Shown piece by piece: positions 9,361-50,600 of a stretch of 64,000 nt of DNA. Position 1 is the first letter of the stretch, and each line of letters opens with the position of its first letter. The translations under genes were made by a program, and so were the position numbers. Under the pieces are notes generated by a model, which did no database searches, was not told the DNA's origin, and saw only the letters and a program-made list of their open reading frames with translations. Source of the DNA: Anolis carolinensis (Eukaryota); assembly GCF_035594765.1 (NCBI RefSeq), contig NW_026943824.1:8450317-8514316 (forward strand), written 5' to 3'.

Positions 9361-9375
9361 GTATATCATAATATA

Positions 9376-9696: not shown

Positions 9697-9700
9697 TATA

Positions 9701-10239
9701 TCTATATATATAAAAGAGTGATGGCATCAGGGCAGCGGACAAAACAACAAAACTACAGGCCCCCCAACCTCGAAATTTGACAACACAACCCATCATTCAT
9801 GGCTCTAGGTTGATACAACAAAAAGAAAAGAAAAATAAAGTCCTAATTACAGGGAGAGGAATAATAGTTTTTATCCAATTGCTGCCAGTTTGAAGGCTAA
9901 GCTCTACCCACTTGGTCTCCTAGCAACCTACTCAGCCCAGGGGACAGGCAGAGTTAGGCCTCACTTAGGCCTCTTCCACAGATTATCAGATTTGAACTGG
10001 ATTATATGGCAGTGTAGACTCAAGGCCCTTCCATACAGCTATATAACCCATTTGGAATCTTATATTATCTGCTTTGAACTGGATTATCTTGACTCCACAC
10101 TGCCATATAATCCACTTCAGTGTGCATACTAAACATAAAGACAACCATATAACAGACATTCAATACTACCACTACCTCAACAATTTCTCACCAACACCGC
10201 CAGACAACGCCACAGCAACGCGTGGCCGGGCACAGCTAG
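9701..10239 (+). mobile_element. Non-autonomous Helitron
   Basis: A|TC...GCCACAGCAACGCGTGGC...CTAG|T termini, with no TSD. Confidence 0.85.
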
Positions 10240-10630
10240 TATCATAATATAATAATTGTATATTATATATTACATGCAATGTTACTAATTGTATTGCAGT
10301 ATGGTGGTATAGTACAATATAACAATATATAAAACGAATACTGTACTATGTTAATAAAATATAGTATATATATAATGTTTTAAGGTAATATATTATTATT
10401 ATTATTATATTGCAATATAGTAATACAGTACTGATATATTAAAAATAATTATTATCTATTGGAGGTGCTTTGAATGCGATATTCCTGCTTCTTGGCAGGG
10501 GGCTGGACTGGATGGCCCACAAGGTCTCTTCCAATTCTAGGATTCTAAGATTCTAATGATAATATATGATGCAGGTAGCTTTTGGTGTGAGAGAATTGGC
10601 TGTCTATATAGACGTTGCCCAGGGGATGCC

Positions 10631-15744: not shown

Positions 15745-15811
<67 letters not shown>

Positions 15812-16481
15812 TCTTCTATATACTGCAATTAAGTAACTATAACAATAACAAAAATTTAATTAATTTTTCCAGAATATACACAATTTAGTGTAATACAAAT
15901 AGTAAAATAGATACTCTAACTTGCAGTCTTAAATCTGTTCTATTTATATCCCTTTTTCATATCTATATATTAATCCTTCTTTTTCTCTTTCCTTTTTTCT
16001 TTTCCTTTTTCTTCTTTATTACTATTATATTATTATTGTATTATAAAAGAAATCTTAATAAAAAGTATTATAAAAAAAAAGAAAACATGCAAATGTGAGT
16101 AGATCAATAGGTACCACTCCAGTGGGAAGGTAACGGCGCTCCATCCGGTCATGCCGGCCACATAATAATAATAATAAATAATAATAAAACTTTATTTTTT
16201 CCCATCTATCTCCTCGAGAGGACTCAGGAGGTGTCTACGGACAACATCGGCTCTTCGGCCTAGGACTGGAGGTGAGCACCAACCTGCAGAGTCCGACGCA
16301 ACTAGTTCTAATGTGAAGGGGAAACCTTTACCTTTACAATATTTCCTACTTGCAATCTAAATCCTGAAGGTATTCATACCTAGCCCTTTATGTCCGTAAC
16401 ATACCAAAAGGGATCCAAATGAACATGGTGATTACAAAGGTGTGCGTTATGGGTATGATCTGATCAAGAGGACTGTTTTGA

Positions 16482-20999: not shown

Positions 21000-23900
21000 A
21001 ACATTGAGGCTAGGTGGCCATCTATCAAGGGTGCTTTGCTTGTGCTTTTGGTCCACAAAGGCAGAAGGGGGTTGGGATGATGATGATGATGATGATTATT
21101 ATTATTATTATTATTATTATTATCATCATTATTGCTCGGTGCCCAACTATAGTCCGGCCCTCCTACGGTCTGAGGGATTATGAACTGGCCCCCAGTTTTA
21201 AAAGTTTGGGGACCCCTGCTTTAGAGTGTTTGCTTATCTTTTTCACATAGAAAGAAGATGGCTGTATACTAAGAGAGGCCTGACTATTTCTGTGGCCCTG
21301 ACATGTCACATCTCTTTTTATGTTTGGAACCTTTAGAGTGTTTGCTTATCTTTTTCACATAGAAAGAAGATGGCTGTATACTAAGAGAGGCCTGACTATT
21401 TCTGTGGCCCTGACATGTCACATCTCTTTTTATGTTTGGAACCTTTAGAGTGTTTGCTTATCTTTTTCACATAGAAAAAGTATAGCTGTATACTCAGAGA
21501 GGCCTGACTCTACTGTAAATACTAAACATAAAGACAACCATACAACAGACATTCAATACCACCACTAACTCAAATTTCTCACCAACACCACCAGACAACG
21601 CCACAGCAACGCGTGGCCGGGCACAGCTAGTAATACCATATAATAATATTAATTATATGTTATATATTACATATAATATTACAGTATAGTGATATAGTAC
21701 AATATAGTAATATATAATGCTAATATTGTGCTATGCTAATAATATAATATATTGTATGTACATACAGCTGCTCTCTGAGTCCCCTTCGGGGTGAGAAGGG
21801 CAGGATATAAATGTAATAAATAAATGTAGTAAATGAATAAATAAATAATTTTAGACTTAGGCTCACCCAAAGTCTGAAATGACTTGAAGGCACAACAACA
21901 ACAACAACAATCCTAATTAACTTGACTATCTCATTGGCCAGAAGGAGGCCCACACTTCCCATTGAAATCCTGATAGGTTTATGTTGTTTACAATTGTTTT
22001 CATTTTTAAATATTGTATTGTTCTTTCGTTGTTGTTGTTGTTTTGCACTACAAATAAGACATGTGCAGTGTGCACAGGAATTTGTTTGGGTTTTTTTTTT
22101 TCAAATGATAATTCGGCCCCTCCACAGTCTGAAAGATTGTGGACCGGCCCTCTGTTTTAAAAGTTTGAGGACCCCTGAACTAGAGTATTCATTGATGAAT
22201 GTAAGCAGAATATAGCTTGGAACATAGCTTGAAAAACAAAACAAAATGTGTTCCCCATCCAGACAGAGATGGCCAGTGACAAAAAGCTGAAAGCCTCAAA
22301 GTAAACTGTAATTATTCTGCCGGCCCATTTATGTTGGATAAGTGAGACTCTACTGCAGGGGTCCTCAAACTTTTTAAGCCAAGGGCCGGTCCACAATCCT
22401 TCAAACTGTTGAGGGGCCGGATTATCATTTGAAAAAAAAATAAACAAATTTTGATGCACACTGCATATGTCTTATTTGTTGTGCAAAAACAACAACAACA
22501 ACAACAACAACAATGAAAGAACAATACAATATTTAAAAATAAAAACAATTTTAGCCAATATACATTTATCAGGATTTCAATGGGAAGTGTGGTCCTGCTT
22601 CTGGCCAATGAGATAGTCAAGTTAATTAGGGTTGTTGTTGTTGTTGTTGTTGTTGTGTGCCTTCAAGTCATTTCAGACTTTGGGTGAGCCTAAGTCTAAA
22701 ATTTATTTATTTATTATTTACTGCATTTATTTACTACATTTGTATCACACTCTTCTCAGAGTGGCTTACAAATTATATGTACATACAATATATTATATTA
22801 TTAGCATAGCACAATATTAGCATTATATATTACTATGTTGAACTATACCACTATACTGTAATATTATTAGTAATATTATATGTAATATAGAATATATAAT
22901 TAATATTATTATATGGTATTATTATTAGTGTTATATTGTATTACATTATAATATCATTATCAATATTACATGTATATACAATATATTATATTATAAAACT
23001 GAGGGCGGGGGCCAGGTAAATGACCTCGGAGGGCCGCATCCGGCCCCCGGGCCTTAGTTTGGGGACCCCTGCTCTACTGTATAATCAGTTAACAAAGATT
23101 TAAAACCTAATGACAAAAGCTCCATCAATAAACCCAGATACAAAGCCAGCACAAATACCTTATCTCTTTTCTCAGTTCATCCTCTGCTGTTTTATTTTCT
23201 CCTGGATTAATTTTGGCCCTAAATTTCCTGTAATGCAGGGTGTCCGCTGTCTTCTCCTGCTGCCCCATGAGCTTCTTGACTCTGTCCCTTAAGACGCTCA
23301 GGGAAAACTCCAGCGGCACCGTCCTCCTTGCTATTTCTACTGGGATGTCGCATTGGGAAAGCAGCGCAGACATCTGAAGGTCCTTTGTTTCCAAGGGAGA
23401 GGGGCTGGTCTTCAGGCGCTTCACTTTAGGGGAGTCACTATTGACTTGTTGGGGTGACCCACTCCTATCGCTTTGGTCCGTGCCACATTCGGCTCTTGAG
23501 AAAAACCCGTTCCTTGCAAGGCCTTCTCTCTGAGCGCCTTCGTCATGAATGTGGGATTCACCAAAAGAACTACTGAAACGGCTCCCAATTTCTATAGATC
23601 CTGAACCCATCTCCGATCCTGCCAAGGCACTACTGCAACCAGAATCGGGAACTTCTGCCAACTTCTTGACATTTGCGTCAGCGTCACGCCTGCTTAAATC
23701 CACCGTGTTTCCACTCCTCTCCACTTTCCCGGAGCCGGTTTCCTTCTCTGGTGAATCCAAAACACTAAAAAACGTTGGGAGTTTTCGTTGTCCGTGAGAA
23801 GGGCGCTGCGGATTGAGATTTTCGGTTGCTTTTTTTACAGCGCGGAGGGAAAACGCTTCCCTAAGTTTGGCAGCAGTCACGGTGATTTTCACATTTCCAC

Positions 23901-26900
23901 TCCGATTCGGAGACGAGGAATCCCGTGTTTCCAAGGGAGGCGATTCCGCCCCATTTCGAACTGTCGTTTTAAAGTTCCCTGAGAAAGTGAAGAAGAAGGA
24001 ACAGTTTTAAGTACAGTAGAGTCTCACTTATCCAACATTCACTTATCCAACGTATTTTTGTAGTCAATGTTTTCAATACATCATCATATTTTGGTGCTAA
24101 ATTTGAAAATATAATAATTACTACATAGCATTATTGCGTATTGAACTACTTTTTCTGTCAAATTTGTTGTATAACATGATGTTTCGGTGCTTAATTTGTA
24201 AAATCATAACCTAATTTGATGTTTAATAGGCTTTTCCTTAATCCCTCCTTATTATCCAACATATTCGCTTATCCAACATTCTGCCGGCCCGTTTATGTTG
24301 GATAAGTGAGACTGTACTGTAGCAGTAAAAATTCCAAGTTTTAGGAACATAATGACTCTAACAACGCATAAAAGGTAAAGGTAAAGGTTTCCCCTGACAT
24401 TAAGTCCAGTCGTGTCTGACTCTGGGGGTTGGTGCTCATCTCCATTTCTAAGCCAAAGAGCCGGCGTTGTCCGTAGACACCTCCAAGGTCATGTGGCCGA
24501 CATGACTGCATGGAACGCCGTTACCTTCCTGCCAGAGCGGTACCTATTGATCTACTTACATTTGCATGTTTTCAAACTGCTAGGTTGGCAGAAGCTGGAG
24601 CTAACAGCGGGCACTCACCCCGCTCCCCGGATTTGAACCTGGGACCTTTCGGTTAGCAAGTTCAGCAGCTCAGTGCTTTAACCCACTGAGCCACCGGAGG
24701 CATACTCTCTTTATAGAAAGAATAAGCGGCTGATGGGGAAAAGGAAGGGGCCTGGGGCTGTTAGGAATTGTGGGAATTGAAGTCGAAAACATCTGGAGGG
24801 CCCAAGTTGGCCCATGCCTGGCTTAAACCAGCCCCTTATAAGAGATACAGAACCATACATATTCTGTAATAATCAAATGTATGGGCATATAACATATATC
24901 ATGTGATTGTATGTTTTCCAGGCTGTATGGCCATGTTCCAGAAGCATTCTCTCCTGACGTTTCACCCACATCTATGGCAGACATCCTCAAACGTTGTGAG
25001 GATGCCTGCCATAGATATGGGCCAAACGTCAGGAGAGAATGCTTCTGGAACATAACCGTACAGCCCGGAAAACACACAACAACCCTGTGATTCCGGCCAT
25101 GAAAGCCTTCGACAACATATTTCTTGTGAATCTTGCACTTATATATTTTTTAATGTATGATTTCTTGCTTATTTCACATAGACTCATTATGTACAGGCAA
25201 AACACCTACACACTGCAGCTGACACACTCCTGAGTACAACACACACTTTGGGAAGTTCTGGTCTACACTTGGACCACCAACCAGTTAGCAAAATACATTC
25301 AAAAGCCTCTGCATTCACAGGAAGATTGGTAAATAAATGGCTGCTGTCATTCTTACCTTCAACATCGATCAATTTCTGATTGAGGACAATTTTGTTCACA
25401 TCATTGCCAAACATTCCCATCATTGAAGTTTTCACAATGGCTAGCAACAGTTTTTCTTCTTGCAGAAATATTTGCCTTTTGTCAGGTGTGACATTGATGT
25501 CAACAGATTCTAAATAAAATACATGCTTGTTTAAAATCAATTGCCAAATCAGGCTTTAACAAGGTTTTTATGACACTCAAGTTTTGTAGAAAAATACAGG
25601 TGACTCACCCGAGTCTGCACAGATGTTAAGAACCACAAACGGATATTGATGTCTGTTGTACATGTGGTACACTTCATTCACAAGTTTGGAAACCTGCCCA
25701 GGAACAAAAAAGTTATCCCAATTATGCCTGTCTTAAAAATAATAATTATATGCAGATAGCAGAAGATATGGGCTCAGTGCTGGAGTAAAAAGTTTAAAAA
25801 TTACTATCATTAAAGAGAACTTCAATGAGATAATGCAAGGTGTGCTGTGTTATATGTGGTTTAAAAAATTATTTAAAGGTTTGATTGGTTTTACTATGTA
25901 TTTTTAATAAGGTCTGTGTTTAATTCTATTTTAATGTGTGAATTTTAGTTTATATATTGTATGATTTTTAGTGTTAGTCACTTTGAGTCTTTGAAAGAGA
26001 AGACGTGGGTATATACAGTAGAGTCTCACTTATTCAACACTTGCTTATCCAATGTTCTGGATTATCCAATGCATTTTTGTAGTCAATGTTTTCAATACAT
26101 CGTGATATTTTGGTGCTAAATTCGTAAATACAGTAATTACTACATAGCATTACTGTGTATTGAACTACATTTCTGTCAAATTTGTTGTATAACATGATGT
26201 TAGGGCCGGGCTGTGGCACAGCTGGCTAGTAACCAGCTGCAATTAATTTCTACTGACCGAGAGGTCATGAGTTCGAAGCCCGGGTCGGGTTAAGCCCCCG
26301 ACCATTAAATAGCCCGGCTTGCTGTTGACCTATGCAGCCCCGAAAGACAGTTGCATCTGTCAAGTAGGGAAATTTAGGTACGCTTTATGCGGAGAGGCTA
26401 ATTTAACTAATTTACAACATCATAAAAACTGCCAGCAAAACACAAGGAAAGGAACGAGGAAGTACAGCCACTAGTGGACAGTGAAGCAACAGCTCCCCCT
26501 GTGGCCGGAATCGTGAAGCTGGAAAAAAAATGTTAAATGCCTCTGTGTCTGTCTATATATGTTGTTTGTCTGTTGGCATTGAATGCTTGCCATATATGTG
26601 TTCATTGTAATCCACCCTGAGTCCCCTTCGGGGTGAGAAGGGCGGAATATAAATACTGTAAATAATGTTTTGGTGCTTAATTTTTGAAATCATAACCTAA
26701 TTTGATGTTTAATAGGCGTTTCCTTAATTCCTCCTTATTATCCAACATATTCACTTATCCAACATTCTGCCAGCCCGTTTATGTTGGATAAGTGAGACTC
26801 TACTGTACTACTAATAATAATAACATGACAAGGATTTAAAGATCGAATTGCAAAGACTCTGGCACAAACCAGTCAAGGTGGTCCCAGTGGTGATCGGCAC

Positions 26901-28474: not shown

Positions 28475-31400
28475 TATACCCCACTTCCATCTCCCCGAAG
28501 GGACCCGGGGAGGCTTACATGGGGCGACAGCCCAGGCAAATACAATAAGAAACATAAAATACAGCAATTAACAAAAACCACGGGTGAATGGGAATAAACA
28601 ATTAACATAAAGATAGCAAAAATATTACTAAACAACATATTAAAATACAACAGTAGAATCATAAAAACCAACTGGGCAAAAGTGCACTAAGCGAGTTTTG
28701 TAAACATGAGGTAGTTGGTAAAGTGCTACAAAATCGTGGAAGATTTGGAGTGGGGTAAACCTTGTGGTTATAACAAAAAATTAACAAAAAAAAGGTGCAA
28801 CCAATTGGAAAACAGACACCGAAGCAAAATTTATCATGCAGATGGGGAGTTCTTATCCCCATCTATTGCTGCTGTGCTGTTTTAGCACAACAGCAATAGC
28901 CAGTGTGCCACATCCAGGTCTTTCACTCCATGCACTTTTCCCTTAAGCCTCATTGCTTTGCCTTTGTCCTCCAGGCTAAAAGGGAGAACATACAATCTTC
29001 TACTTACGTATAAAGCCTAGTGGGAATATCAGCAGGATTCAGACCATATTCCTCGCAGATGGCATCACTAGGAGGCAGCTGAACAAACGGGATCAGGCTT
29101 TGCACCTGGACAAGCAAAGATTTGACTTTATTTATACCTTTTATTTATTAAATTTATACCTTTCTGCCATGCTGAATCACACCACTATTTGTTCTGAACT
29201 CCTGTCTTTTCTTTCTGTATCATATCCCCTTTATATGTAGTGCATTCAATACTAAAAATTGGAAAATCAGGATAACAAAATCTATATATATAAAAGAGTG
29301 ATGGAATCACGGCACCAGACAAAACAACAAAACTACAGGCCCCCCAACCTCGAAATTTGACAAAACAACCCATCATCCACGGCTCTAGGTTGATACAACA
29401 AAAAGAAAAAAATAATAAAGTTCTAATTAGAGGGAGAGGAATAATTGCTTTTATCCAATTGCTGCCAGTTAAAAGGCTAAGCTCCTCCAACTTGGTCTCC
29501 TAGCAACCCAATAAAAAATAATAAAAAACACAAAAAATAATTAAAAACACTAAAAAATTAATACAATAAAATACTATAATAACATAAAATAACTAAAAAT
29601 AATACAAGAAAATAATAAAATATAATAAATAAAAAGATAACTTACAATAAAATTAATTTACAAATACAAATAACGTCAAATAAAAATTACACATCAATTT
29701 TTAACCAATACCACCACCACTTTGCCACAGCAACGCGTGGCCGGGCACAGCTAGTCTATATATATAAAAGGGTAATGAAATTTCGGCCTAGGACAAAACA
29801 ACAAAACTACACATCCCAGAAACACTAAACTTGGCAGCACAACCCCTCGTCCATGCCTCTACGTTCATACAACAAAAAGAAAAGAAAAATAAAGTCCTAA
29901 TTAGAGGGAGAGGAATAATTGTTTTTATCCAATTGCTGCCAGTTAGAAGGCTAAGCTCCGCCCACTTGGTCTCCTAGCAACCCACTCAGCCCAGGGGACA
30001 GGCAGAGTTAGGCCTCACTTAGGCCTCTTCCACACTGCCTATAAAATACAGATTATCTGATTTTAACTGGATTATATGGCAGTGTAGACTCAAGGCCCTT
30101 CCACAGAGCTATATAACCCATTTATAATAGTCTTAATGTAAGGTAAAAACCTTTACCCTTTACCTTAACTACCACCAGTTCCTCAATACTTTATTTCCCA
30201 TCCCACCATACTTCGCCACAGCAACGCGTGGCTGGGCACAGCTAGTACATTATAAATCTATCTCTGAATAACAAACATCAATGGAACATACTTATGCATA
30301 GATGAATCTGTAAGTCAAATAAATGAATTCAAAACCACAACCTCCAAACAAATAATATTCAAAACACAGGTCTTCACAAAGGACACATATGTTTAGAGAC
30401 ATGGGGTGGCAGTTCAAACCCGCGAAACGGGGTGAGCTCCCATCTGTCAGCTCCAACTCCTGCCAATCTAGAAGTTCAAAAACATGCAAATGTGAGTCGA
30501 TAAATAGGTACTGCTTCAGCAGGAAAAAGGCAAAAAGACACTCCAACCAATCTTGCTGGCCACACAACCAGGAGGTGACAACGCAGGCTCCTCGGCTTGA
30601 AAATGGAGAAATGAGCTCTAATGGCAGGAAAAGTAACAGTAGTGATAGTACCTGCTTTTGCCCAAATATTGCTCCGATGTTTTCTTTTACAGTAGAGTTC
30701 CCATTAGTGCATACAACAGGTTGCTTCTTCCCTTGACCAACCTGGTTGGTGCAAGTAATTCGAACTCCTGTTGAAACGATGCAGTAGGCTTGTAATACCT
30801 GAACCATTTTTGCGTACTCCTGGAGAAAATAAGCATGAAAACATTATTGTTTAGGAACTGTATCATGACAATCAAAATTACTATGCAACCAGGAATTAGA
30901 AGGCAACTGCAATTCCACCAGCTGTACCTTCTTTATGTTGCGCTGAAATTCTTTATGTCGCACTGGCAATGTATGGAAGAGCTGCTGCACGCTGACCGTT
31001 GTCCCTTGTTGACGGGGACATGGGACCTTCAGGGTGATTTTCCCGCCGTGATCAAACACCAGGCGTGTTCCAACCTTGGCGGACGTATGACAGGTGAAAA
31101 TGGAAACATCGCTGTAAACAAGTAAACAAAAACTAAGAAAAAAATATTAAATACAAATGTACAACAACAATGGGCTTTAAAACACTGGCATCTGCTTTTT
31201 TGTCTTTAACATGCCCTTCCATTCTCCTCCAGTAGTTTCCCCCAGGCAGTAAGCAGCCAGGCTTTGAAGCTGAAAGACCATTCAATGCTAATCAAGGTGA
31301 CCAATTGCAACATTCACACTTGCCTCAAACAGACAAGAGTTATTTCTCCCACCCCAGACATTATTCCACAGATGTATAAAACTCATTTCCAACAGACCTC

Positions 31401-33477
31401 ACAACTTCTGAGGATGCCTGCCATGGATGTGGGCAAAACACCAGGAGAGAATGCTTCTGGAACATGGCCATACAGCCCGGAAAACTCACAACAACCCACT
31501 GATTCCGGCCATGAAAGCCTTCGACAACACAGTTCATAAGCTCATAAGGTTTACAAATATTTTATCTATGGATTTGCCTTTCCAGAGAAGTATCTCACCT
31601 TAACGCACATAGAGAACTCAGAGCTTCACCTCGAAAGCCGAACGTTTCAACATTTATAAGGTCAGAGAAATCTTGTATCTTGGATGTATGATGTTTTAGA
31701 GCTGGAAGTTAAAACCAGAAACAGGGAATGTGTTTAGATTGCAGTTACTGTTAAAGTAGGAATGATTGTATATAGAATTGTTTAAATGTAATTAAGTCAT
31801 GGTGGTGCAATGTGTGCTGGAGATTGTATCATGCACTGTGTACTGTTTACTATGACAGTGTGTAAAGGGTTAAGTGCCTGCAAACTTGGATTGCATCAGA
31901 CAGCAGAGTCTGGGATAAATTGCCCTCTGCTTCCTATCTTTCTCTTCTCTGGATTCCTTCCCGTGTGTGCCTGTGTGAGAGCTGTGTATTGTTTTGTGGA
32001 ATTCCGTTCGTGAGTAAACTTTTGATAGAGAGCTGAAGACTCCAGCGTCATCATTTATCTAGTGTTTTCTCGTCAGTGACTTCTGCTGCGTGTGTGCCTA
32101 GCAAAATCGCGCTGACAGTTACCATTATCTCACAGCACTGGATTTACTGCCTCTGGCTAACAGTAATATCTGGCCACCTATTACATAGTGACCGCCAAAT
32201 GCAGCATTGCCCAAACACGAATCAAGGAACATGAAAGGCCAGAGAAGTCAGCCATAGAAGAGCACTTGATGAACCAACCTGGACACAGCATATTATTGGA
32301 GAACACAGCAATGCTGGGCCACTCTAACAACCACCAGACTACTTAAACTTACTTAAGCCAGCAAAGTTTTCCTCTTCGACGCCACAACCGTTATCAGAAA
32401 CTTCAATGAGATCTGCGCCATAATCTTTCAGCTTTACTTCTACAAAACATAAAGATTATTTGTTAGTCAAAGCATTTAAATTTTTAAAAAGTTACAAGGC
32501 ACCTCTCAACATACCTCTGCTGTTGACAATCTGGTGGCAGTTGAAGTTAAACTGCACTTTTAGAAAAATATCATGGGGCAGCATTTTATTGGGGGGGGGG
32601 GGGGAACAATACCCTTATATTGCTCCTTGGAGATGTAGTTTGTCAGATATGACACCATAACGCCCATTGGATCCAACTAGCATAGCCAGCGATGGAGAAC
32701 AATGGAAACCATGGTCCAACAATATCTTACAGCCACGTAATACTTTTGCAGGTTTGTGATCCCACCAGTTCTTTGTTGCTGGGAGGTGGTACTTGAGGCA
32801 TAAGTTCCAATGGATCATTTGGGCCACATAGTTGTGCCTCTGCTAGTAGTCTGTCTGTGCGATTTTGTTACAGCAGCTGAGGATATGATCAATGGTTTTG
32901 TCGGTTTCCCTGCACAGTCTGCATTTTGGGTCATCAGCTGATTTTTCGATCGTGGCCTTAATTGCATTTGTTCTGATGGCTTGCTCCTGGGCTGCAAGGA
33001 TCGGGCCTTCTGTCTCCTTATTCAGGGTCTCATTCGTGAGCCAGAGCCAGGTCTTCTCCTTATCAGCTTTTCCTTCAATTTTGTCAAGGAACTTTCCATG
33101 CAATGTTTTGTTGTGCCAGCTGTCGGCTCTAGTTTGTAGTGCGGTTTTCTTGTACTGGTTAATAATAATACAGTAGACTCTCACTTATCCAACATAAACG
33201 GGTCGGCAGAATGTTGGATAAGCGAATATGTTGGATAATAAGGAGGCATTAAGGAAAAGCCTATTAAACATCAAATTAGGTTATGACTTTACAAATTAAG
33301 CATCAAAACATCATGTTATATAACAAATTTGACAGAAAAAGTAGTTCAGTACAAAATAATTCTATGTAGTAATTACTGTATTTACAAATTTAGCACCAAA
33401 ATATCACGATTTTTTGAAAACGTTGACTACAAAAATGCGTTGGATAATCCAGAATGTTGGATAAGTGAGACTCTACT

Positions 33478-33513
<36 letters not shown>

Positions 33514-36500
33514 TTATATGGCTTTGTGGAAGGGCCCTGAGATGCTGTTAAAACTTCAACTCCCAGAAGCTCTCGACACCACGGACAAGAGCTAAAAATT
33601 CTGGAAATTGCAGTCCAAAAACAACCTTTATCATGCGTTTAATACTATGCTATACCATACCATCAATTTTGTATTAAATATTGAAAGACAATCATGATAA
33701 CCAACATCGTCCCCGAAAGCAAAGATTTCGAAATGAGCCCCAAAACTTACCCACAGTTGTGGCACCGGCGTCGATACTATTTTCCACCAGCTCTTTCACC
33801 GCCGTACATAGATTCAGCACCACTTGTCCGGAGCATATCTGGTGAACCGATCTACGGTCTATTGGCTTGATGGCTTTAGCAGACTCTGCCCTTTGAGCAA
33901 AAACACAAACAGCATTACTTTTCCAAGTTCAGCGGGATATAGAAGCAATAGGGTGCATTTTAGAAGGGATTCGATGAAGAAAATGTGGTGCCAGAGTTAC
34001 CAGACATGGTATCTATCTATCTATATATATATAAAAGGCTTTTGGCATCATGGCGACTCACAAAACAACAAAACCCCAAACCCCCCAAACTCAAAAATTG
34101 CCAACACAATCAATCATCCCCGCCTCAAGTAAGATACAACACAATTACACTAAAAACACAATCACAACAGCAACAACCACAACAGGCGACCAGGTACTCT
34201 TCACCCACCCCTGAGCCTTCCCTCCAGCTGTTTTCAACTTCAACTCTCACCATTCCTAACACCTTAACCTTCTGAGAGAAAAAAACAAAAGGGACTCAGG
34301 CTGTTACGAATGCTGGGAGTTGAAGTCCAAACCACCTGCAGCAGGCCCATGCCTGTATCCCAGGGTACAGACAAACTGCATTTAGACCTCATCCATACTC
34401 ATCCATACTACTGTCCCTAGAAAATACAGATTATCTGATTTCAACTCCATTATGTGGCAGTCTACACTCAAACCCCTGCCACACAACAATATTACCCAGA
34501 ATACCAAGGCACATCTGCCAATATCTCCTTTAAACTGGATTATCTACCTTGGTATGCTAAATAATATTCCTCTGACATCGCCTTCACTCTACACTGCCAT
34601 CTAATCCAGTTCAGTCTACATTTTATACAACTATGTACAACTGACCTCATATAATCCAATTCTAACCACCTAATATAACATTATAAATATAATATATAAG
34701 ACTTACTATGGTATAATAATAGAAAACAATATGATCTCTAAAACCAGGAGACGAAATAAAGACCAACACTCGGAAAGCAGGGAAATTGGGAATTCTACAA
34801 ACGAAACAATTGGGGCCAGCTAACACTTCCCAACAAAACATTCCTCCAGACAGTAAACAAACACCCTTTCAACCTGCAAGGCCATTAAAAACTAATCAAG
34901 GTGGCTAATTCCATCATTTAAACCTCCCACGCCGACACTATTAATTCCTATTCAAACTCACCAACCAAGGATTCCGCAAGGTAAAAACCGACCAGGCTTA
35001 CAACCATCAAGCCTATTCAATACTTTTCAACCAGGCCAACCAACATTTCCCCTACATACAAAACCCCCAAACTCTGAAACCACAACACTACTCTGTCCCA
35101 TTCAACCTCGCCTAGCAACAATACCTTATGTGCAAACCAACCAGGCGTTTAACCTACAAACCTATTCAATACCATTCAATCTGGCCAAACAAGAATTCCC
35201 CTACTAAGGAAGTACCCACACTTCAAAGCGCCTCTTTGATTAATGCTACGACTCCAACCACTCTGTTGTCGATCGCACTTTGGGGGATCGGGCCCTTAAA
35301 GAGAGACCCGACCCGGTCCTGAGGGAACGGACCTTGGCGAAGCCAAAAGGAGAATATAAGCCGCAATACAACCTGAAGCCTGAAATGAAGAAGGTCCGCC
35401 AAGTTGAAGGAAAATCCGCCAAGGAGTTTTTATTGAGCAATTCAGCTGAAAAGGACGCTAATAGTGATCATTCAATCTACTAGTGTAACATACGTTTCAA
35501 ATAAAGCCATATTTATACAATGTTTCGGTCTGACAGCCCTTTGAATTTCCCGCCCCGCTTCCCCGCCCATCCGATCGCGGATAGGCTGGGAGGTTGAACG
35601 AGGCGGGCTTTCGTTTCCCGCCTTGCTCTGCTGGCCCAATGGGGAGCCGTTTTTTGTCCCCCCTCGGGCCAATCAGAGAGGAGGAGGCGGGAGCTATAGA
35701 AACAATGAGGTGACCGGACAGGAAACATCGGATTAATTCTGGCCCAGCCGATTTCTAAAGGAATTTAATGGCACCCATCAAGGGTGTCCGGGGTCCTGTC
35801 ACGTTTTCAGATTTTAGATATGCCTTGGGGTGTCAGACGGGAAGTGGTGATGGGTGGTGATGAGCCGCCATTGACGGCCCCACAGGGTGCCTTCCAGCGG
35901 CGTCCTGGCCTGGGATATGACGATGTTTGCCTTGGGGGCGAGTCACCTTTAGGAATTTGGTGACTCTAAACCCTATATTGTCCATGCGATCGGAATGAGA
36001 TTGGATTAAACTGTGGCAGATTATCCTTTTGTTTTTGGGAAGGGAGGTCTGGGTCATGGAGCTAAGGTTCACGTTGGGGTCATAATATTTCCCATTTGAT
36101 TTCATGATTTGACAATTATATGGGATAAAATGAAAATTAAAATAAAGTTGGAACATAAACCCAGCTGGGAAAAACACATATTTTCCGGGGATCCCAAAGA
36201 GTATAAATACATATTAGCCGATAGGTAGATTTCAAGGAAATAAAGGAGAATCCATAAAGGTAGGTGACATTGCATAAAGGGGAATCATGAATGATATAAA
36301 CAATAGAAAACATTTGATAAAAACGAAGTTTACAACATCTGGGGAACCCAATATAGAAGTGGAGTCCTAACAGTATGATTTCACAATTCATGAAGTTGTT
36401 ATCTCTTGCCTCAGAGTGCAGGGATAATCCACAGTAAACTCCAGTAAAAAGTCCCAATCACCTTCTACTATAAATATATGGAATATAGAACATAAAGTCT

Positions 36501-38854
36501 TGATTTTTGAACTATCTTTTACAAAGTCCTGGAGGGGAGGTCACCTCGATCACATTTTCCCCCCTTCGGGGCTTGGAAATGGCTATGAACATTTCCCAAA
36601 GCCCCGACATTTCACTGCATGCAGGGCCTCTGCCTTGGTAGATCAGATTGTGCCTTTTTGTTGGAGGGCAGGAGCTTGAAGAGGTGAAAGCTGAGGTTCA
36701 GTCAGTGGTGGGTGATCCCATGGTGTTGAAACAGATGTCCCTTGGTCTGGAGTCATGGGAAATGGAGCATGAAGGTGGAGGTGGTGAGGGCTGGGGATGA
36801 TGGAGGCTGTGATGCAGTACTCCCATTTGGCTGCCTTTTCTTGGCTGCAGCTTGGGCCCCCCTTTGTAGTTGGCAGCTGGGGGCAACTGGGCACAGCTTC
36901 TGCGCCTCACAGCACGGCGCCTCCTGGTGACTGCAGGCAGGTCCAGCACTCCAACAGAGGAGACGGAAAGGAGAGAGTGCCTAGGGAAACTAAGGACAGA
37001 TTATAAGCCCCCCCTCCCTCCCGTGGTGGGGTTAGTCAGGGAAGTCACTCATACCTTGTGAGGGCTCCAGCAGTCCTGGGGTCCTTCTTTGGCACAGCTC
37101 TGGTGAAAGTGGAACATCCTTCCCTCATGGTGGTCACTGGTAGAATCCTGTTCATTTCTTCTGGGACATCTTCTGCCATGGCGGCCAATTCTGTCCCCTG
37201 GTGATGTCATGAGGGCCTCCTTGGCAGCGTCAAAGGCAGACCTGCACTCAGTAGCCCTTTGCCAGGGCAGAACCAGGCCAGCTGGAGGGCACCATACGGT
37301 GGTCTGGCCATAAAAGCCTGCCATGTGCAAGAATCCTTTCAGCAGTGTCTTAGTCTCTAGCCCCTGAGCCAGGCAGATGGGGCTGCTTCCCCCGTTGGGG
37401 TCTCAGATCAGCCCCAGGTGGGGCTGTCTCTTCTGGGTGACTGGGGGTCCGGGCTTACCCTCACAGGACCATCTCCAATGGCCTCTGGGTTCTAGCTGCT
37501 GCATGAAATCCACAGCGCACTCCGAGAGCCCCTACCCAGGTCTTAGAACTGTTCATGGTGGCAGGTATGGATTATGGGTCTTGCAGTCTGGTCTGATGTC
37601 CTCAGTCAGGTGGTTGGGTCCGGTCCTCTGGATCTCTTCAGCTGTGCCTGGAAGGTCCCCTGGACTCTGTACTGCCCCCCCCTCATAATTAAAGGCAGTT
37701 AGAGGGATTTTTAAAACATTCACACGCATGCACTCAGGGAAAGGGAGGGAGAAGGACCCGAAAGGAAGAAAGGAGATTGTTCGGGAACTGTGGAGAGTGA
37801 AAGAGTGCCTTCACTATAAAAGTAAACCAGGATTTTGACTGAATGTTTATAAGGAGAAATGGGGATGCTGGGAAGGAAGGGGGGGGGGGAGCTTTGAAAA
37901 AGGAGAATGTTGAAGTGCATTTCGGCCTAGGAAAACATGAAGTGGAAGAGAGAGAGAGAGAGAGAAAAAAAACTCACATATAGAAAAATACATCAATTCT
38001 TCCATCCCCCCCTTTTCTCTCTAAGATAAGGGAGGCTTGAGGAGAGAGAGACAAGAAAAAGTTAAAACCACAGAAGCAGCAGGTTTTCTCTGGGGGGGGG
38101 GGTCTCACAAAATATTAGGGCTTGAACCTTTGAAAATAGGGAGGTGAGATGGCACAGAAGAAAAGGGAGAGAGAGAGAGCATAGCACTAAGCTAGTCCAT
38201 TCCAGCCCTCCTTCCCAGAAAACTATATATCACTGGTGGCTTTTAAGGCAAAGGGATGAGTAGAGAAGAGTTTACAGCCCACACATTACATAAACACACA
38301 AAATTTAATCAACACTTTTCTGGGAGTCCCCTTCCCCCACCCAAATCCTTTGCCATGCTTCCCAGATGGGAAAGAAAGAAAAAGGGGAAATTAAGAAACA
38401 GAAGCGGCTAAAGGAATGGCCCCCCTCCCCCCTTTTGTAAGGACCAAAGGAAATATAAGACAACACTGAGGTAAAATCTTAGGGATAGTGTCTAGAAAAT
38501 GGGAACAAAGGGAAATAAGGGATTTTAAAAGGTGAGAAGAGAGGAAGGAGAGGAGAAATGGATTTGAGATTTGAGGGAGAGAGAGAGATTTTCACTCAGG
38601 CCGGGGAAGAGAGAGAGAGAAAAGAAAAAAAGGGTACAATTTGAGGGTAGGCAAGGCAGAATATCAAGTTGGAGAAGATTTGATTTGAAAGAAGGAAGCA
38701 ATCCTTGGAGAACTATAGATCTTGGTGGCAGGCTTCAGGACTGAATCTTCTCCCCCCTTTGCCCCTCCAAAAACAGGAAGAGGAAAAAAGTGTCCTCTTT
38801 GCACAATCTCCCCGCGGCCCCTCCTTCTCCTCTCTCTCCAAGAGAGGAATGAGC

Positions 38855-38914
<60 letters not shown>

Positions 38915-41900
38915 TGGTGGGGGCAAGAGAAGGAGGGGGATGGTGGGGCGATTCTTCCCATCTGAGGAAAACTCAGAATGTGGCAGGAGTTGAGTGGCAG
39001 GGGCAGATACAATTTGGGGGGGGGGGCATCAGGCTTCAAAGGAACGGCTGGGATGGGGGCTGAGAGAGTGTGACTTGAGAAGAGGAACAGTGTTTTGGAT
39101 CAGGTGTGTTTCGAGGTGAGAGGGGAGGGGGCTGGGAGCCCTCCTTCACGTTAGACTGGGCTGAACTCTCTGGAGGGGAATTTCTTGGGGGGGGGGATCC
39201 CTGAAGTAAGGGTTCCCTTGGAAGGCCAATTTGGGAGTCCTGGATCAGTGTAGGACTCAGGGTGAGGAGAAAAGGTGGGGATGGGGATTGGAGGAGGGGG
39301 CTGATGGGGTGGGGAGAAGGCAAGCAAATGTGTCCAGAAAATCCTCTGGAGGAGGGGGTAAGGGGAAAAGGGTCTAGGGGGGAATCTTTGGGGGGCTGTT
39401 TTTGGAGCCCAAATCTCTGCATGGGAAGACGTGGGCCCCCCTCCCCCCCTCCGATTCTCTCCCTGGCTTAGGGCCATGAACATTGCAGCATAAGCAAGTT
39501 GGGACCACTTGCCCTCCCCCTGGCGAGTCACCTTAGGTCAACACTCCGAATTCGGCGACTCGAGCAAGGGGGGGGGCAAGCTGTTCCCCCTTCAAGGGCC
39601 ACAAGGGGCCACTTATGTGCTCTGAGTTAGCCCAACCTGGCCTGCACCATGTTTTTTGATGCAAAGCCCACCCCAATTGGCCAGGATCTTACCCAATGGA
39701 GAATCCCTGGGGATGTCTGCTGGGGTGGGACACCCTAGACGTGCTTGAACAAACACCCATCCTTGGCTCAGCCCCTGCCCAGTACCTGACAGTTAATGGA
39801 GTAACGACTCACCCACCGGCTGGATGCAACTCGTCCTTTCAAGAGTTCTCCCTACACCAAGGCTGAATGGCTGGCGTTCGTGGGATCCGCAGGTGCCCCG
39901 GGAACACAATCGTTCCCCTACCCCACGATCCTAGAACCTGTAATCTTACAAGCCAGACTGTTCTCACACACCACCGGGCGCCAGATGTTCCCGCGTTTCA
40001 CCAGGAATTTGTTACCGAGCCCTGATCCGAAGTGCAATACCTCCAGAACTCCGCCCACCTGGGTCTTAACAACGGGGCCGGTTCCCTTTTATTTTTACAG
40101 GGCGTCCCCTGTTTCACGTTGGCGCCTTTCCTTCGAGGAGCTAAAAATCTGCTTCCTCCTATCTGGCTCCTTTGTTCAGTACCCTGAATCAGATCTAGAG
40201 AGAGAAAGGGGCTGCCAGAGAAATTTGGATGTGAAATGAGGTCAATTTGTTGGTCGGAGGGCCCTCCTTGCAGCCGTTTCTCTCCCCAACCTGTCCCAGA
40301 ATATCTGGACCAAGGTTGCCGCTTGGAATTTTAGCCTAGAAATTGATCTTTGGAACTTCCAAGCAAGTCCCTTCGTGGTAAAGCCAAATTATGTTGTCGA
40401 TCGCACTTTGGGGGATCGGGCCCTTAAAGAGAGACCCGACCCGGTCCTGAGGGAACGGACCTTGGCGAAGCCAAAAGGAGAATATAAGCCGCAATACAAC
40501 CTGAAGCCTGAAATGAAGAAGGTCCGCCAAGTTGAAGGAAAATCCGCCAAGGAGTTTTTATTGAGCAATTCAGCTGAAAAGGACGCTAATAGTGATCATT
40601 CAATCTACTAGCGTAACATACGTTTCAAATAAAGCCATATTTATACAATGTTTCGGTCTGACAGCCCTTTGAATTTCCCGCCCCGCTTCCCCGCCCATCC
40701 GATCGCGGATAGGCTGGGAGGTTGAACGAGGCGGGCTTTCGTTTCCCGCCTTGCTCTGCTGGCCCAATGGGGAGCCGTTTTTTGTCCCCCCTCGGGCCAA
40801 TCAGAGAGGAGGAGGCGGGAGCTATAGAAACAATGAGGTGACCGGACAGGAAACATCGGATTAATTCTGGCCCAGCCGATTTCTAAAGGAATTTAATGGC
40901 ACCCATCAAGGGTGTCCGGGGTCCTGTCACGTTTTCAGATTTTAGATATGCCTTGGGGTGTCAGACGGGAAGTGGTGATGGGTGGTGATGAGCCGCCATT
41001 GACGGCCCCACAGGGTGCCTTCCAGCGGCGTCCTGGCCTGGGATATGACGATGTTTGCCTTGGGGGCGAGTCACCTTTAGGAATTTGGTGACTCTAAACC
41101 CTATATTGTCCATGCGATCGGAATGAGATTGGATTAAACTGTGGCAGATTATCCTTTTGTTTTTGGGAAGGGAGGTCTGGGTCATGGAGCTAAGGTTCAC
41201 GTTGGGGTCATAATATTTCCCATTTGATTTCATGATTTGACAATTATATGGGATAAAATGAAAATTAAAATAAAGTTGGAACATAAACCCAGCTGGGAAA
41301 AACACATATTTTCCGGGGATCCCAAAGAGTATAAATACATATTAGCCGATAGGTAGATTTCAAGGAAATAAAGGAGAATCCATAAAGGTAGGTGACATTG
41401 CATAAAGGGGAATCATGAATGATATAAACAATAGAAAACATTTGATAAAAACGAAGTTTACAACATCTGGGGAACCCAATATAGAAGTGGAGTCCTAACA
41501 GTATGATTTCACAATTCATGAAGTTGTTATCTCTTGCCTCAGAGTGCAGGGATAATCCACAGTAAACTCCAGTAAAAAGTCCCAATCACCTTCTACTATA
41601 AATATATGGAATATAGAACATAAAGTCTTGATTTTTGAACTATCTTTTACAAAGTCCTGGAGGGGAGGTCACCTCGATCACAACTCCACAAAACGGCCAG
41701 ACTTTCACGCTACAAGGCTATTCACTCCTTTTCCACCTGGCCAACAAATAATTCCCATAAGCCACAGCAACGCGTGGCCGGGCAAAGCTAGTATTATATA
41801 TAGAGATATATATTGAGAGAGAAGGCAAGGGGAACTATTGGCCCTGCAGGTGTTTTGGACTCCAACTCCCAGCATGCCTCACAGCCTCAGGCCCTTTCCT

Positions 41901-42066
41901 TTTCCCCCTCAGCCGCTTAAGGGGGAAAAGGAAAGGGCCTGAGGCTGTGAGGCATGCTGGGAGTTGGAGTCCAAAACACCTGCAGGGCCCAAGTTTGCCC
42001 AGGCCTGACATAGATGCAGACATACATACACAGACCACAATAACATTACCTTGGAGCAATCTCCAT
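11727..42066 (-). CDS. PMS2: Mismatch repair endonuclease PMS2 (MutL-alpha subunit), 15 coding exons, 845 aa
   Basis: Exons 42066-42050, 33890-33751, 32439-32353, 31701-31599, 31111-30928, 30819-30652, 29105-29008, 27241-27142, 25693-25609, 25509-25357, 23978-23159, 19580-19413, 17997-17897, 14434-14265 and 11870-11727 (total 2538 nt). All introns are GT-AG and in phase. GHKL motifs [16 protein letters not shown] and GFRGEAL; endonuclease motif [12 protein letters not shown]; ACR; CPHGRP. Confidence 0.97.
12236..13156. mobile_element. Tc1/mariner-superfamily non-autonomous element (TIR CCGTATATACTCGAGTATAAGCC)
   Basis: TIRs with TA flanks; second copy at about 27797-28183. Confidence 0.7.
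13157..14060. repeat. AT-rich minisatellite (about 160-bp unit)
   Basis: AGTGGTATAGTACA recurs at about 13320, 13641, 13803 and 13981. Confidence 0.8.
14678..16336 (+). mobile_element. Sauria SINE split by L1
   Basis: tRNA-like head (GGTTCGAATCC), core GAGTAGATCAATAGGTAC and (ACCTTT)n tail. Confidence 0.75.
14816..16080 (+). mobile_element. 5'-truncated L1 (ORF2 C-terminus, 3' UTR and polyA) inserted in a Sauria SINE
   Basis: 13-bp TSD GAAAACATGCAAA (14803-14815 and 16081-16093). Degenerate CWKC..H..C knuckle. AATAAA plus A-tail. Confidence 0.85.
16705..17367 (+). mobile_element. Solo LTR inserted in a LINE/SINE tail
   Basis: TG...CA termini with imperfect TSD GTCAC/GTCCC. Similar to 1482-2260. 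Confidence 0.65.
18119..18628 (-). mobile_element. Non-autonomous Helitron (second subfamily)
   Basis: Reverse-complement TC...CTAG termini; near-identical to 29755-30245. Confidence 0.85.
18650..19335 (+). mobile_element. Sauria SINE split by a solo LTR
   Basis: Head at 18650-18744; body resumes at 19100. Confidence 0.75.
18745..19099 (-). mobile_element. Solo LTR nested in a Sauria SINE
   Basis: 5-bp TSD CTCCT; reverse-complement paralog of 31749-32117. Confidence 0.75.
19715..19955 (+). mobile_element. CR1 LINE 3' fragment
   Basis: AACATTAGGAAGAACTTCC...GGATGGCCATCTG...; degenerate (ATTCTATG)-type tail. Confidence 0.7.
21219..21510 (+). repeat. 112-bp tandem repeat, about 2.6 copies
   Basis: TTAGAGTGTTTGC at 21221, 21333 and 21445. 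Confidence 0.9.
22356..23071. mobile_element. hAT-type MITE
   Basis: TIR CAGGGGTCC...GGACCCCTG with 8-bp TSD CTCTACTG. Related copies at 20847-21218 and about 21640-22177. Confidence 0.85.
24372..24701 (-). mobile_element. Sauria SINE
   Basis: Full-length paralog of 9376-9696. Confidence 0.8.
26203..26665 (+). mobile_element. tRNA-derived SINE (Anolis SINE2-like, with L2-type tail) nested in a mariner MITE
   Basis: Box B-like GAGTTCGAAGCC and tail CCCTGAGTCCCCTTCGGGGTGAGAAGGGCGG. It interrupts MITE 26016-26805. Confidence 0.65.
26825..27100 (+). mobile_element. R4/Dong-like non-LTR retrotransposon 3' fragment within (TAA)n
   Basis: Translation [20 protein letters not shown]...QLQK (C-terminal restriction-like endonuclease region), flanked by TAA repeats. 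Confidence 0.7.
29281..30245 (+). mobile_element. Two head-to-tail Helitrons (29281-29754 and 29755-30245)
   Basis: Junction ...CACAGCTAG|TCTATATATATAAAAGGG; each unit has both termini. Confidence 0.85.
31749..32117 (+). mobile_element. Solo LTR in PMS2 intron 3
   Basis: TG...CA termini with 5-bp TSD GTTAC. Confidence 0.8.
32740..33160 (-). mobile_element. R4/Dong-like LINE fragment (CCHC knuckle region)
   Basis: [16 protein letters not shown]...[18 protein letters not shown]. Confidence 0.75.
35264..36554 (-). repeat. 3' LTR of the ERV
   Basis: Preceded by the PPT on the minus strand. TATAAAT at 35517-35511, AATAAA at 35434-35429, and GC, CCAAT and E2F-like (TTTCCCGCC) boxes at 35540-35700. 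Confidence 0.95.
36900..37400 (-). pseudogene. pol: Decayed pol remnant (RT thumb/connection, possible integrase scrap)
   Basis: [18 protein letters not shown] and [17 protein letters not shown] resemble RT thumb/connection motifs. No YxDD and no long ORF. Confidence 0.6.
39036..39760 (-). pseudogene. gag: Frameshifted retroviral gag remnant (matrix plus proline-rich region)
   Basis: MGVCSS (myristoylation consensus) at 39760, then in other frames [11 protein letters not shown] and [16 protein letters not shown]. These resemble class-I ERV matrix motifs. A Pro-rich segment follows; multiple stops and frameshifts. Confidence 0.75.
40392..41682 (-). repeat. 5' LTR of the ERV
   Basis: Direct repeat of 35264-36554 at an offset of 5128. 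Minus-strand TATAAAT at 40645-40639 and AATAAA at 40562-40557. Confidence 0.95.
41840..41989. repeat. Palindromic hAT-like MITE
   Basis: Perfect inverted arms of about 69 bp around a short CTCAGCCGCTTAA loop. Confidence 0.85.
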
Positions 42067-42939: not shown

Positions 42940-43400
42940 GTAAAAAGAAACCCCGCCTTCTCCATTCAGAGAGACCAATAGGACGAAGGCTAGCCCTCGA
43001 ATGACCAATGGGAGAAGAGGAGAGGGGCTGTGGATGGGCGGGTCATGTGCCTCTCCTCCAATCGGCAAGGCGGGGCGTGAGGGGCCTTCCTCGTGTGAGC
43101 CAGTCGGGCGGGAGAGCGACCGGGCGCCGGGTGCGGGGCCTTTTTGCGCCTCAGATGCCGATGTACAAGGTGAGGCCCTTCCAGGGCGGGCCGGGCTCCG
43201 CGGTGCCGCCCGAGCACCTCCCCACTTGCATGTACCGCCTCGGCAGCGTCCACCGGGAGCCCAAAGCCGGTCCCTCGCCGCCGGCGGAGCAGGTAGGAAG
43301 CAGGCCTCGGCCTTCAAGGGCCCGTCCTGAGGCGAGGGAAGACGCCTGCCTTCGTGGCGCTTTCGCTTTCAGTCCAGAGGAGGCGGTTTGGTGGCCTGTG
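42940..43400. promoter_or_regulatory. CpG-island promoter of AIMP2 (part of the PMS2/AIMP2 divergent promoter region)
   Basis: GC- and CpG-rich, with several CCAAT boxes and GGGCGG boxes, and overlapping AIMP2 exon 1. Confidence 0.8.
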
Positions 43401-47667: not shown

Positions 47668-50600
47668 TTAAACAGGAGAGCCCAGTTCCTGAATTCTGTG
47701 TCTTTCCTCTTTCTCTTGCAGCAATAGCTGGACCCTTTCTTTAAGCAACCTGATTTCTTCTTCTTGCTGTATTACTTTCTGTTGCAGACTGCAAATAACC
47801 TAAAGATGAAGAATACAATGATTACATTTTAAATCATGAATATCACCATATCTTAAAAGCAGACACTTTCTCCATAAAAGTCAGCCTGCCAGGATTGTTT
47901 TATATAAGCCTAATTATGTATCCATGGCAGATGTTTTCAGTTAAATTACACTAAATACCCCCAAATGCATTTTTGTCAAATGGTAGCACTATTGTCTATC
48001 ATGACTAGTTACCAAAGTCAACGTTCAGACAAATATAATTTTCTAATTCCCTTATGCTGTTTTGGCCTTCTCCTTTCCATAGCTGCCTGAATTAGGAGTT
48101 AAGCTAAATTAAGATGAATGTGTGATATTAAAGAATTGAAGGGTGAGGAAAGAAATTAAAGCTCTATCACCAGCACATCCACACAATCTAGTATTACGCA
48201 GGAGAAAGGATCTTTTCCTTCTGTAAAATCATGCAAGGATGTGTTTCTATGTTAATATTTAAACTGACAGACATCCCCCCCATCTGATAAGTGCAATTGA
48301 CTGCCAGATGTACAGGCCTCCTTGCAACTCTAGTTCAAACCTCCGTGACAGCTGCATATCCCTCCAACTATTCTTAACTGTATATAAAATGCCAGATGGT
48401 ATACTGTTACAAGGAATTCTGGTTAGTTATTAGAAGCAAGGTCATGAAGTAGCCAGAAGCAGTTTTATACAGTATCAGATATCAAGGCTGTGTCTGAGAG
48501 CCCTTTCTACACAACTGTTAATTAAATAAACATGAGTATATTAACAACTGCTAAGAAGATTTAACTTATATACAGGATGACAAGTACTCCCAACTTATTG
48601 ATGCAAAAATAACTGTAAAAACATACATTTGCGGTGTTATGGAATAGTTCACTTTCAAGAAGTTGAGCAGCAGTTGGTCTGTTTGAAGATTTGAGGCTGG
48701 TTAGCAGCTTAATGTATTTGGTCTGTACTGGCCATCTTTTGCTAAAAGAGAGGGGAATGTTGCTGTTCCTTAAGTCCATCAAAACTTTAGTTCTCTCCAT
48801 TTCGGTTCCAAATGGCTGGAAAAGCTCAAACAGGATGACACCCAAGCTGTACATATCTGACTAGAGGCAGAAGAGAAGTTCAGTATTAACAAAATAATGT
48901 CTAAAAGGCTAGTAGAAGTTGTTCACTCCATATTAAGTACTGAAAATAGCTTAAGTGTAATTATAATACAATGAAAAATATGGGATGTAGTAAATTTTGT
49001 AATTTGTGAAAATAGCAGTGTTTTAACTATAATTATTCGGGATTACATATATGAAAGGATACTATACAAAGTTGACATTGTCACTGTATTGGCAAATAAG
49101 GAAGGAGACACTTGTTCCTTCCCTTGAAGGGAGTTCCTAATTGGTATCTTATTACCCAAATGGCTGCACTGCATTTTTGTCTCCCCTTTGCACCATTTAC
49201 TTTGCATCCGCCTTTTGAACATGTATGCTGAAACATAACTGTTATACTTTAAACATAACAGAAGCTCCACAATTGAGATCACTTTAAGAAATGATATCTC
49301 AATTAAATTTAGGTTACTCTACCTTAACATCATAGTGAGAACCTTCTAGTTGTTCGGGTGAAGCATACAAGCAAGTGCCAACTCCAGAGGTATGCATTAG
49401 TTCTGTGCAAACAAACAATAAATAGACAATTTCAGGTTTACAATAAGAAAAGAAGCAGCAGTATCTCAAACAGTACATTTCCAATTCAAACCAAATATTT
49501 GAAATTACCTGTTCTCTTCTTTGCACTTAGCAAGTGGATTGGATCTTCCTGAATAATATCTCTACAGGCCAGGCCAAAGTCACCTATTTTCACATGGTAG
49601 TCAGATCCTTGTAGAAAGATATTTCTGGGCTGTAAAAGCAGGAGCTCTGGGTTAGTTGTTTCAGAAAATTTGGCTATTTTTTACAAAAAGAAATGCAAGC
49701 ATTTTCCAGTCCCTCATGCTTTCTACCTATCTGCAAATGCATGTTGGCTGCAAAAAGCAAAACTGAGCCACAAATGGGAGGAAATGGTGTAAAGAAGACT
49801 CTTCTGCACAGATATTTCCTAGGTCCAAATAATGTGTCATCTCTGTCAAGAGAGGAGAGCCATTCAATCATCTAGTTCAGGGTAGAAAACGTGTGACCCT
49901 GCAGAAGCTGGACTACAACTCCCATTAGCCCTAGACAGCATTGCTGATGGTACAAGATGAAATGTCATAGCCAAACATCTGGAGTTATACATTCCGTATT
50001 ACTTTCATTGGTTCTAGAACTAGAAACTGCATCATCACAAAGATTTACTGGTCCAAACTCAGAATTCTGGATTTCATTTTCCTCAGACATAGGATTCACA
50101 GTGAGGCATTTTCTTTCTTAAAATGGGCAATCTGATTGGAGGCTCCTCCAGGCAGAATAACAAGGTACCAGACAGAAATAATTGAAGCTATAATGACTAA
50201 TGACATGTTTCAAAAGTCAGCCTATCAGCTGATTATTTGCGGAGTCTTTCTAAATGACCACCATCAAAGTACCACAACTACTTGTAAAGAGAGTTAATGT
50301 TGCTAAATCATACTATATTCTTGTGAACACATTCCTCTATATATCAAAAATGTCAAGTATATTTTGATAAAATCATCAAATCTAAGTGAGCAGTTTTGCC
50401 AAATATTTGCCCCATCGTCTGATATGAACAAATCCCAGACCTAGAAATAGAAAAAATTGAGAACAACCTCATGTTTGCAATTTTAATTTTGCTGCTCTTT
50501 CATGATATTATAGTTTTCCCACATATAATTGGTAGATTTCTTTTTTGTGATTTGATTATTCACAGGTTTGTAGCTGCCACTTCCTCTTCAATTGCCTGGC

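Follow-up and report, generated by a model that had tools for sequence, protein, structure and literature searches.

Helitron H7, a rolling-circle transposon in a 64,000-nt stretch of the Anolis carolinensis genome (contig NW_026943824.1, positions 8,450,317 to 8,514,316; hereafter the window), has lost guanine from one strand. Roughly half of the G on its top strand has been replaced, most often by C, then by A and then by T, and the C on the same strand has been left alone. H7 is the name given here to the element made up of window positions 34020-35263 and 41683-41791. The one-strand loss of G is confirmed and highly significant at the 34020-41791 locus, and the changes are tied to the Helitron and its top strand and are not CpG decay. 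Strand-specific mutagenesis tied to rolling-circle copying, acting before this copy inserted, is probably the best explanation. All donor copies, control repeats and other Helitron copies used in the analysis come from within the window.

The left part of H7 (34020-35263) consists of 448 A, 370 C, 284 T and 142 G, giving 11.4% G and a GC skew of about -0.45, and several of its 50-nt bins contain only 1-3 G; the whole window is 19.5% G. A reference base was assigned to each H7 position as the majority base across every significant match in the rest of the window, which covered 626 non-redundant positions. On the top strand, 50 of the 115 donor G sites carry another base in H7 (C at 28, A at 17 and T at 5, so that G>T is the rarest G change), and the 158 donor C sites include 0 changed to G, 8 changed to T and 10 changed to A. 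By Fisher test, G>C differs from C>G (p = 3.6e-12), as do G sites (50/115 changed) from all other sites (65/511 changed; p = 1.4e-12), and the spectrum was unchanged when two supporting donor copies were demanded. Taken together, the four other complementary class pairs also favour A or C as the new top-strand base (42 observed vs 31.3 expected, z = 2.77), with none significant singly. A first-pass annotation, made from the letters of the window, had described a composite Helitron whose captured repeats are depleted of G on one strand through G>C and G>A. Both parts of that description hold (28 and 17 of 115 G sites, respectively, with C>G at 0/158), and the strand-resolved spectrum that it proposed for 34020-35263 plus 41683-41791 is asymmetric against the window-derived majority bases. 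Its two example pairs (9992 vs 34440 and 31251 vs 34855) are present as written. CpG decay, which it had set aside, is excluded: six of the 115 G sites lie in CpG, transversions to C dominate, and the observed/expected CpG ratio is 0.38 in H7 vs 0.40 in the window. A sparing of CpG was also looked for at the 115 H7 sites, and there was no sign of it.

H7 is one non-autonomous Helitron of the Anolis Helitron-2 group, 1353 nt long once the young endogenous retrovirus that interrupts it (35264-41682) is removed. Its 5' TC at 34020-34021 follows a host A at 34019, and the start motif TCTATATATA(TA)AAAAG is common to five other elements in the window. The 3' end reads CGCGTGGCCGGGCA(A)AGCTAG followed by T at 41771-41792, with CTAG ending at 41791 and the host target T at 41792. 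The 22-nt 3' end has one mismatch to the end common to five other copies, and the last 32 nt are one base off the family consensus. A predicted 7-bp hairpin stem lies at 41761-41778, 13 nt before the 3' end; its energy is no better than that of shuffles, the piece being very short (z = -0.95). H7 thus has the Helitron hallmarks of a TC after a host A, a CTRR-type end before a host T and a subterminal hairpin. The termini are preserved, as annotated; the annotated 5' end at 34020 was right, and the 3' terminus lies past the retrovirus at 41791 rather than at 35263, in the piece (41683-41791) that the annotation had already included in its proposed check. The retrovirus itself lies outside the Helitron and serves to date it. 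It has TG...CA ends and long terminal repeats (LTRs) of 1291 bp with one difference between them, at LTR position 221, and it is flanked on both sides by the 4-bp target duplication ACTC, which establishes the continuity of 35263 with 41683 as one Helitron. Its interior contains strongly purine-skewed stretches (38351-39450).

The left part of H7 (1244 nt, plus strand) carries the 5' TC terminus, the leader and the G-eroded backbone with its cargo, and the right part (109 nt, plus strand) carries the third subterminal unit, the hairpin and the CTAG 3' end. BLAST of H7 against the rest of the window gave matches of 70-92% to other Helitron copies, to a palindromic miniature inverted-repeat transposable element (MITE), to a second MITE family and to a third repeat. 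The interior is composed of a backbone common to five Helitron copies of about 500 bp together with fragments of three other repeat families, and in global alignment this backbone stays collinear with the short copies as far as the MITE fragment that all of them carry. The 5' leader (34024-34144, plus strand) is homologous to the leaders of the five short copies at 69-80% identity, the closest being the copy at 8947. It is followed on the plus strand by the captured palindromic MITE (34212-34349), identified by BLAST matches to free copies in the window, by fragments of the second MITE family (the 'GGATTATATGGCAGTGTAGACTCA' repeat; 34410-34640), which is un-eroded in the short Helitron copies, where the MITE cargo is intact, and by fragments of the third repeat family (34790-34918), aligned to 5878-5956 and 31237-31314 on the plus strand and to 5500-5595 on the minus strand. 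The 3' portion consists of three tandem units of about 150 nt of the Helitron's own subterminal sequence, with the true terminus on the last one: two lie at 34935-35263 (plus strand; starts at 34935 and 35085) and the third at 41683-41759. A graded erosion across these three units was considered and rejected, the counts being small and non-directional, with single sites (GG, GC, AC) that look stepwise. Ten exact open reading frame translations from the region had no match in the protein collection, and a word search with an 85-residue translation was also empty.

The asymmetry is specific to H7 and does not depend on how the alignments were made. Eleven control repeats put through the same procedure showed no comparable asymmetry (the largest single count was 4 G>C vs 2 C>G), and it is absent from an un-eroded control MITE at 41844-41991, some 50 nt past the H7 3' end. 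As a guard against circularity, H7 was realigned with matrices that gave donor G (or, as a control, donor C) a score of zero whatever base faced it; in these fate-blind alignments 33-55% of G and 72-100% of C were retained, and C>G was near zero. With a matrix tolerant of G>C and G>A, 10 tiles scored at least 120 on the H7 top strand vs 3 on its reverse complement, with maxima of 178 and 129, respectively. The strand of the donor is irrelevant, with 24 G>C and 0 C>G for plus-strand donors and 21 and 3, respectively, for minus-strand donors. The palindromic MITE inside H7 serves as its own internal control, since the arms of free copies are 93-100% complementary and those in H7 have diverged through G loss to 80% over 40 nt. 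On reading the printed arms, seven of the eight arm mismatches in H7 are a G gone from the left arm opposite an intact partner C. A sequencing or assembly artefact, with G miscalled in a poorly read stretch, is very improbable: the odd composition runs from the 5' TC of the element to a retroviral junction with an intact 4-bp target duplication, the alignments have few indels, and about half of the G is read normally, in no particular context.

The borders of the loss coincide with those of the element. The erosion is confined within H7 and starts at its first bases, and the change is absent from the retroviral LTRs within 35264-41682. The 3' terminal 32 nt retain 11/11 G, an outcome with a probability of 0.002 at the loss rate of the body. 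Within H7, G loss is unrelated to local base composition, and the changed sites are not clustered (53 runs vs 57.5 expected, z = -0.86; runs test, 115 sites), so that H7 lacks the clustered editing of processive, single-event hypermutation. A process acting at the locus would not spare the functional terminus or end at the element borders, and we therefore infer that the erosion arose while the lineage was still transposing, before H7 landed and before the retrovirus inserted. The first-pass annotation had likewise placed the process in the transposing lineage rather than at the locus, a placement that the stop at the element ends and the 11/11 G kept at the 3' terminus favour weakly.

One such locus process would be a transcription-linked asymmetry acting after insertion, for H7 apparently lies antisense in an intron of PMS2. 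A minus-strand exon at 30925-31110 encodes residues 119-179 of this mismatch-repair protein (E = 3.5e-27 to solved PMS2 structures), and a CpG-rich stretch at about 43000-43400 is a possible PMS2 promoter. If it is the promoter, gene order would place H7 antisense within a PMS2 intron, which is probably the case, and the H7 top strand would be the transcribed strand. Nearby repeats at 31200-31420 and 41844-41991, probably in the same transcription unit, are nevertheless without asymmetry, and the change begins at the first bases of the Helitron, skips the retroviral LTRs and spares the H7 3' terminus. Known transcription-linked skews are also small. We thus consider a process at the locus highly unlikely.

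The mechanism that we favour begins with the strand asymmetry of Helitron transposition. In Helraiser, the only experimental system, cleavage and joining by the transposase are confined to the top strand, and both the donor sites and the double-stranded circles are synthesised anew and used again (PMC5876387). The top strand of H7 would correspondingly be the strand cut and transferred by the Rep nuclease. During rolling-circle copying, one strand would repeatedly be peeled off and re-made, and its partner would be exposed as a single-stranded template; a top strand that is re-made again and again on such a bottom-strand template has a natural route to one-sided change. Cytosines on the exposed bottom strand may be deaminated and the resulting uracil removed, or they may become non-instructive sites in some other way, and the polymerase re-making the top strand would then put C (REV1-type) or A opposite the lost cytosines, producing G>C and G>A on the top strand. 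When REV1-type or A-rule bypass follows the removal of uracil, insertion of C or A is the known result. Non-instructive sites at bottom-strand cytosines are the chemistry that the sequence suggests: they best fit a spectrum made up mainly of G>C and G>A, with little G>T and with a lean to new C or A among the remaining classes, a lean expected from insertion of C or A opposite a damaged template.

The main rival is damage to the guanines of the top strand itself. The displaced top strand would travel single-stranded and its G would be oxidised or modified to G-pairing lesions, which would give G>C upon complementary synthesis at the new site. This account is consistent with the top strand being the one cleaved and transferred (PMC5876387), with a loss specific to the G of that strand and with the lack of a sequence context, as chemical damage would give. 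Guanidinohydantoin, spiroiminodihydantoin, oxazolone and N2 adducts are candidate G-pairing lesions, and strand-specific G changes have been described in single-stranded DNA plant viruses. Under guanine damage G>T should be more frequent and the other classes should not lean, yet G>T, the usual result of 8-oxo-G and depurination, accounts for only 5 of the 50 changes, and the changes at A, T and C that lean to new A or C (z = 2.77) are left unexplained. The G>A changes (17/50) would in addition need a second type of lesion. We regard guanine damage as possible and fairly unlikely.

The bias could also have been selected. With fewer G (more A and C), the top strand would fold less when single-stranded and would transpose better, and G-poor variants would have taken over the lineage. 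The changes do lean to A and C, bases unable to pair with each other, A and C are abundant in all copies in the leader and trailer that belong to the Helitron itself, and pairing between the arms has been lost in the palindromic cargo. Selection on ordinary mutations should, however, make G>A transitions exceed G>C, and G>C is the commonest change; selection would have had to act on each of some fifty small-effect changes in a family that is not large; and most G in the right arm of the palindrome is still present, leaving much of the pairing in place. Selection is accordingly given little credence.

Mutagenesis tied to rolling-circle copying, the reading that we prefer, can be compared with three known systems. 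H7 resembles the footprints of AID/APOBEC enzymes in retroelements in its strand-coordinated loss of G from the plus strand, which in retroelements arises through attack on a single-stranded replication intermediate. In Anolis, L1 elements carry G>A editing clusters, and the lizard APOBEC1 cytidine deaminase has DNA mutator activity (Lindic et al. 2013, PMC3880073). Unlike those footprints, H7 is in a DNA transposon, its G>C exceeds its G>A, a TpC preference is missing and the edited strand would be the bottom one. The second comparison is with the chemistry of somatic hypermutation (AID, UNG, REV1) and with the single-base substitution signatures SBS13/SBS2, where C>G and C>T occur at C:G pairs with few C>A, as expected if C or A is placed across from the abasic site that uracil removal leaves; read on the bottom strand, H7 has the same pair of C>G plus C>T with few C>A. 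An AID-type context is seen only as a borderline trend: the hot motif WRC has lost 18/30 G vs 32/85 elsewhere (p = 0.053) and the cold motif SYC 11/35 vs 39/80 elsewhere (p = 0.10). Rolling-circle single-stranded DNA viruses and vertebrate mitochondrial DNA likewise have one strand that is single-stranded during replication and are skewed, with an A+C-rich strand as the result. Most of their bias consists of C>T, A>G and G>T; G>C, the main class in H7, is not the main one there.

Several observations weigh against rolling-circle mutagenesis as the explanation. A TpC preference on the edited strand was looked for at the 115 G sites and is absent: in the APOBEC3/APOBEC1-type context (G before A) 13 G were lost and 16 kept vs 37 lost and 49 kept elsewhere (13/29 vs 37/86, p = 1.0). 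The first-pass suggestion of APOBEC/AID-type deamination thus gains no support from a TpC context, and no known deaminase is implicated by the context data. Judging from known rates, the share of lost G would be far too high for spontaneous deamination in brief single-stranded episodes. The palindromic cargo lost 8/13 G from its C-rich left arm vs 6/24 from its G-rich right arm (p = 0.04), which no model considered here explains, and the three 3' tandem units show no clear direction of change. The private changes of the five short copies are without an excess of G>C (12 vs 9); these copies have H7-type termini, and transposition by itself is therefore not always eroding. Finally, the evidence comes from a single locus.

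The other Helitron copies in the window are located at 8947-9375, 9701-10240, 18118-18628 (minus strand), 29281-29754 and 29755-30246, and a further one has its 3' end at 21631. Each copy has little G on its sense strand (skew -0.10 to -0.45), the minus-strand copy included (-0.27). The 3' end at 21631 is preceded by a cargo of tandem repeats of about 113 nt with ordinary G content (21100-21631), so not every Helitron cargo in the window is G-eroded; the 5' end of this Helitron was not found in the window. Region 8947-10240 contains, in this order, a Helitron 5' part (8947-9375), an insertion resembling a short interspersed nuclear element (SINE; about 9376-9698) and a short Helitron that is complete (9701-10240). 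At 29281-30246, two short copies stand head to tail with zero bases between them, CTAG ending at 29754 and TC starting at 29755.

The first of these two copies has a 208-nt A-rich body (29505-29712) with only 3 G on the Helitron top strand. An extreme form of the H7 erosion was considered for it and rejected, as shuffled sequences align equally well to the standard body (z -1.35 to 0.97); the stretch could be low-complexity cargo of unrelated origin, or an end state in which homology can no longer be recognised. Skewed stretches elsewhere in the window were also considered as eroded Helitrons, by reading only: those at 15601-16050 and 50551-50950 have the look of microsatellites or of low-complexity DNA, and no Helitron ends were seen in those at 1601-1900 and 25701-26000. 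The skewed stretch at 29451-29750 corresponds to the A-rich body just described.

The Anolis families Helitron-2N1_AC to 2N5_AC have a TA target and no inverted ends, and 2N3 is reported to be a composite with captured pieces of SINEs or other repeats (Novick et al. 2011, PMC3014272). H7 is like these 2N families in its TA target and its lack of inverted ends, and like 2N3 in its composite structure. Helitron-2N1_AC is 1290 bp long and stands out with a divergence of 19.4%, and Helitron-2N4_AC is 550 bp long (PMC3014272); the size of the short copies (about 500 bp) fits the latter, and membership of H7 in Helitron-2N1_AC is a guess made from its length (1353 nt) and high divergence alone. Novick et al. 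(2011) read the divergence of 2N1 as age and mention no strand bias (PMC3014272). A review of transposon base composition names Helitrons only in its class list, and its passages on strand bias concern long interspersed nuclear elements (PMC9099904). In the literature on Helitrons with strand bias, hypermutation, deamination or transversions, no description of such a footprint was found.

H7 belongs with a known kind of change, the strand-coordinated mutation of mobile-element intermediates. More broadly, lizard Helitrons may undergo strand-specific hypermutation of top-strand G to C or A, as a host defence or as an intrinsic error signature of rolling-circle copying, a generalisation that we put forward as tentative and rather doubtful. 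If it is a host defence, it would be a DNA-transposon counterpart of the APOBEC editing of retroelements or of fungal repeat-induced point mutation, and if either form of hypermutation is true, the apparent age of 'old' families such as Helitron-2N1_AC would be inflated. If the pattern holds across the genome, G>C and G>A should be in excess on whichever strand is the top strand of each Helitron. The single-stranded step of eukaryotic rolling-circle transposition, so far inferred mainly from the reconstructed bat Helraiser, would then have left its first footprint known from nature, and this may also be the first sign of a vertebrate editing its DNA transposons; divergence-based ages of Helitron families and the repeat-masking of their cargo would then be biased wherever the erosion occurred.

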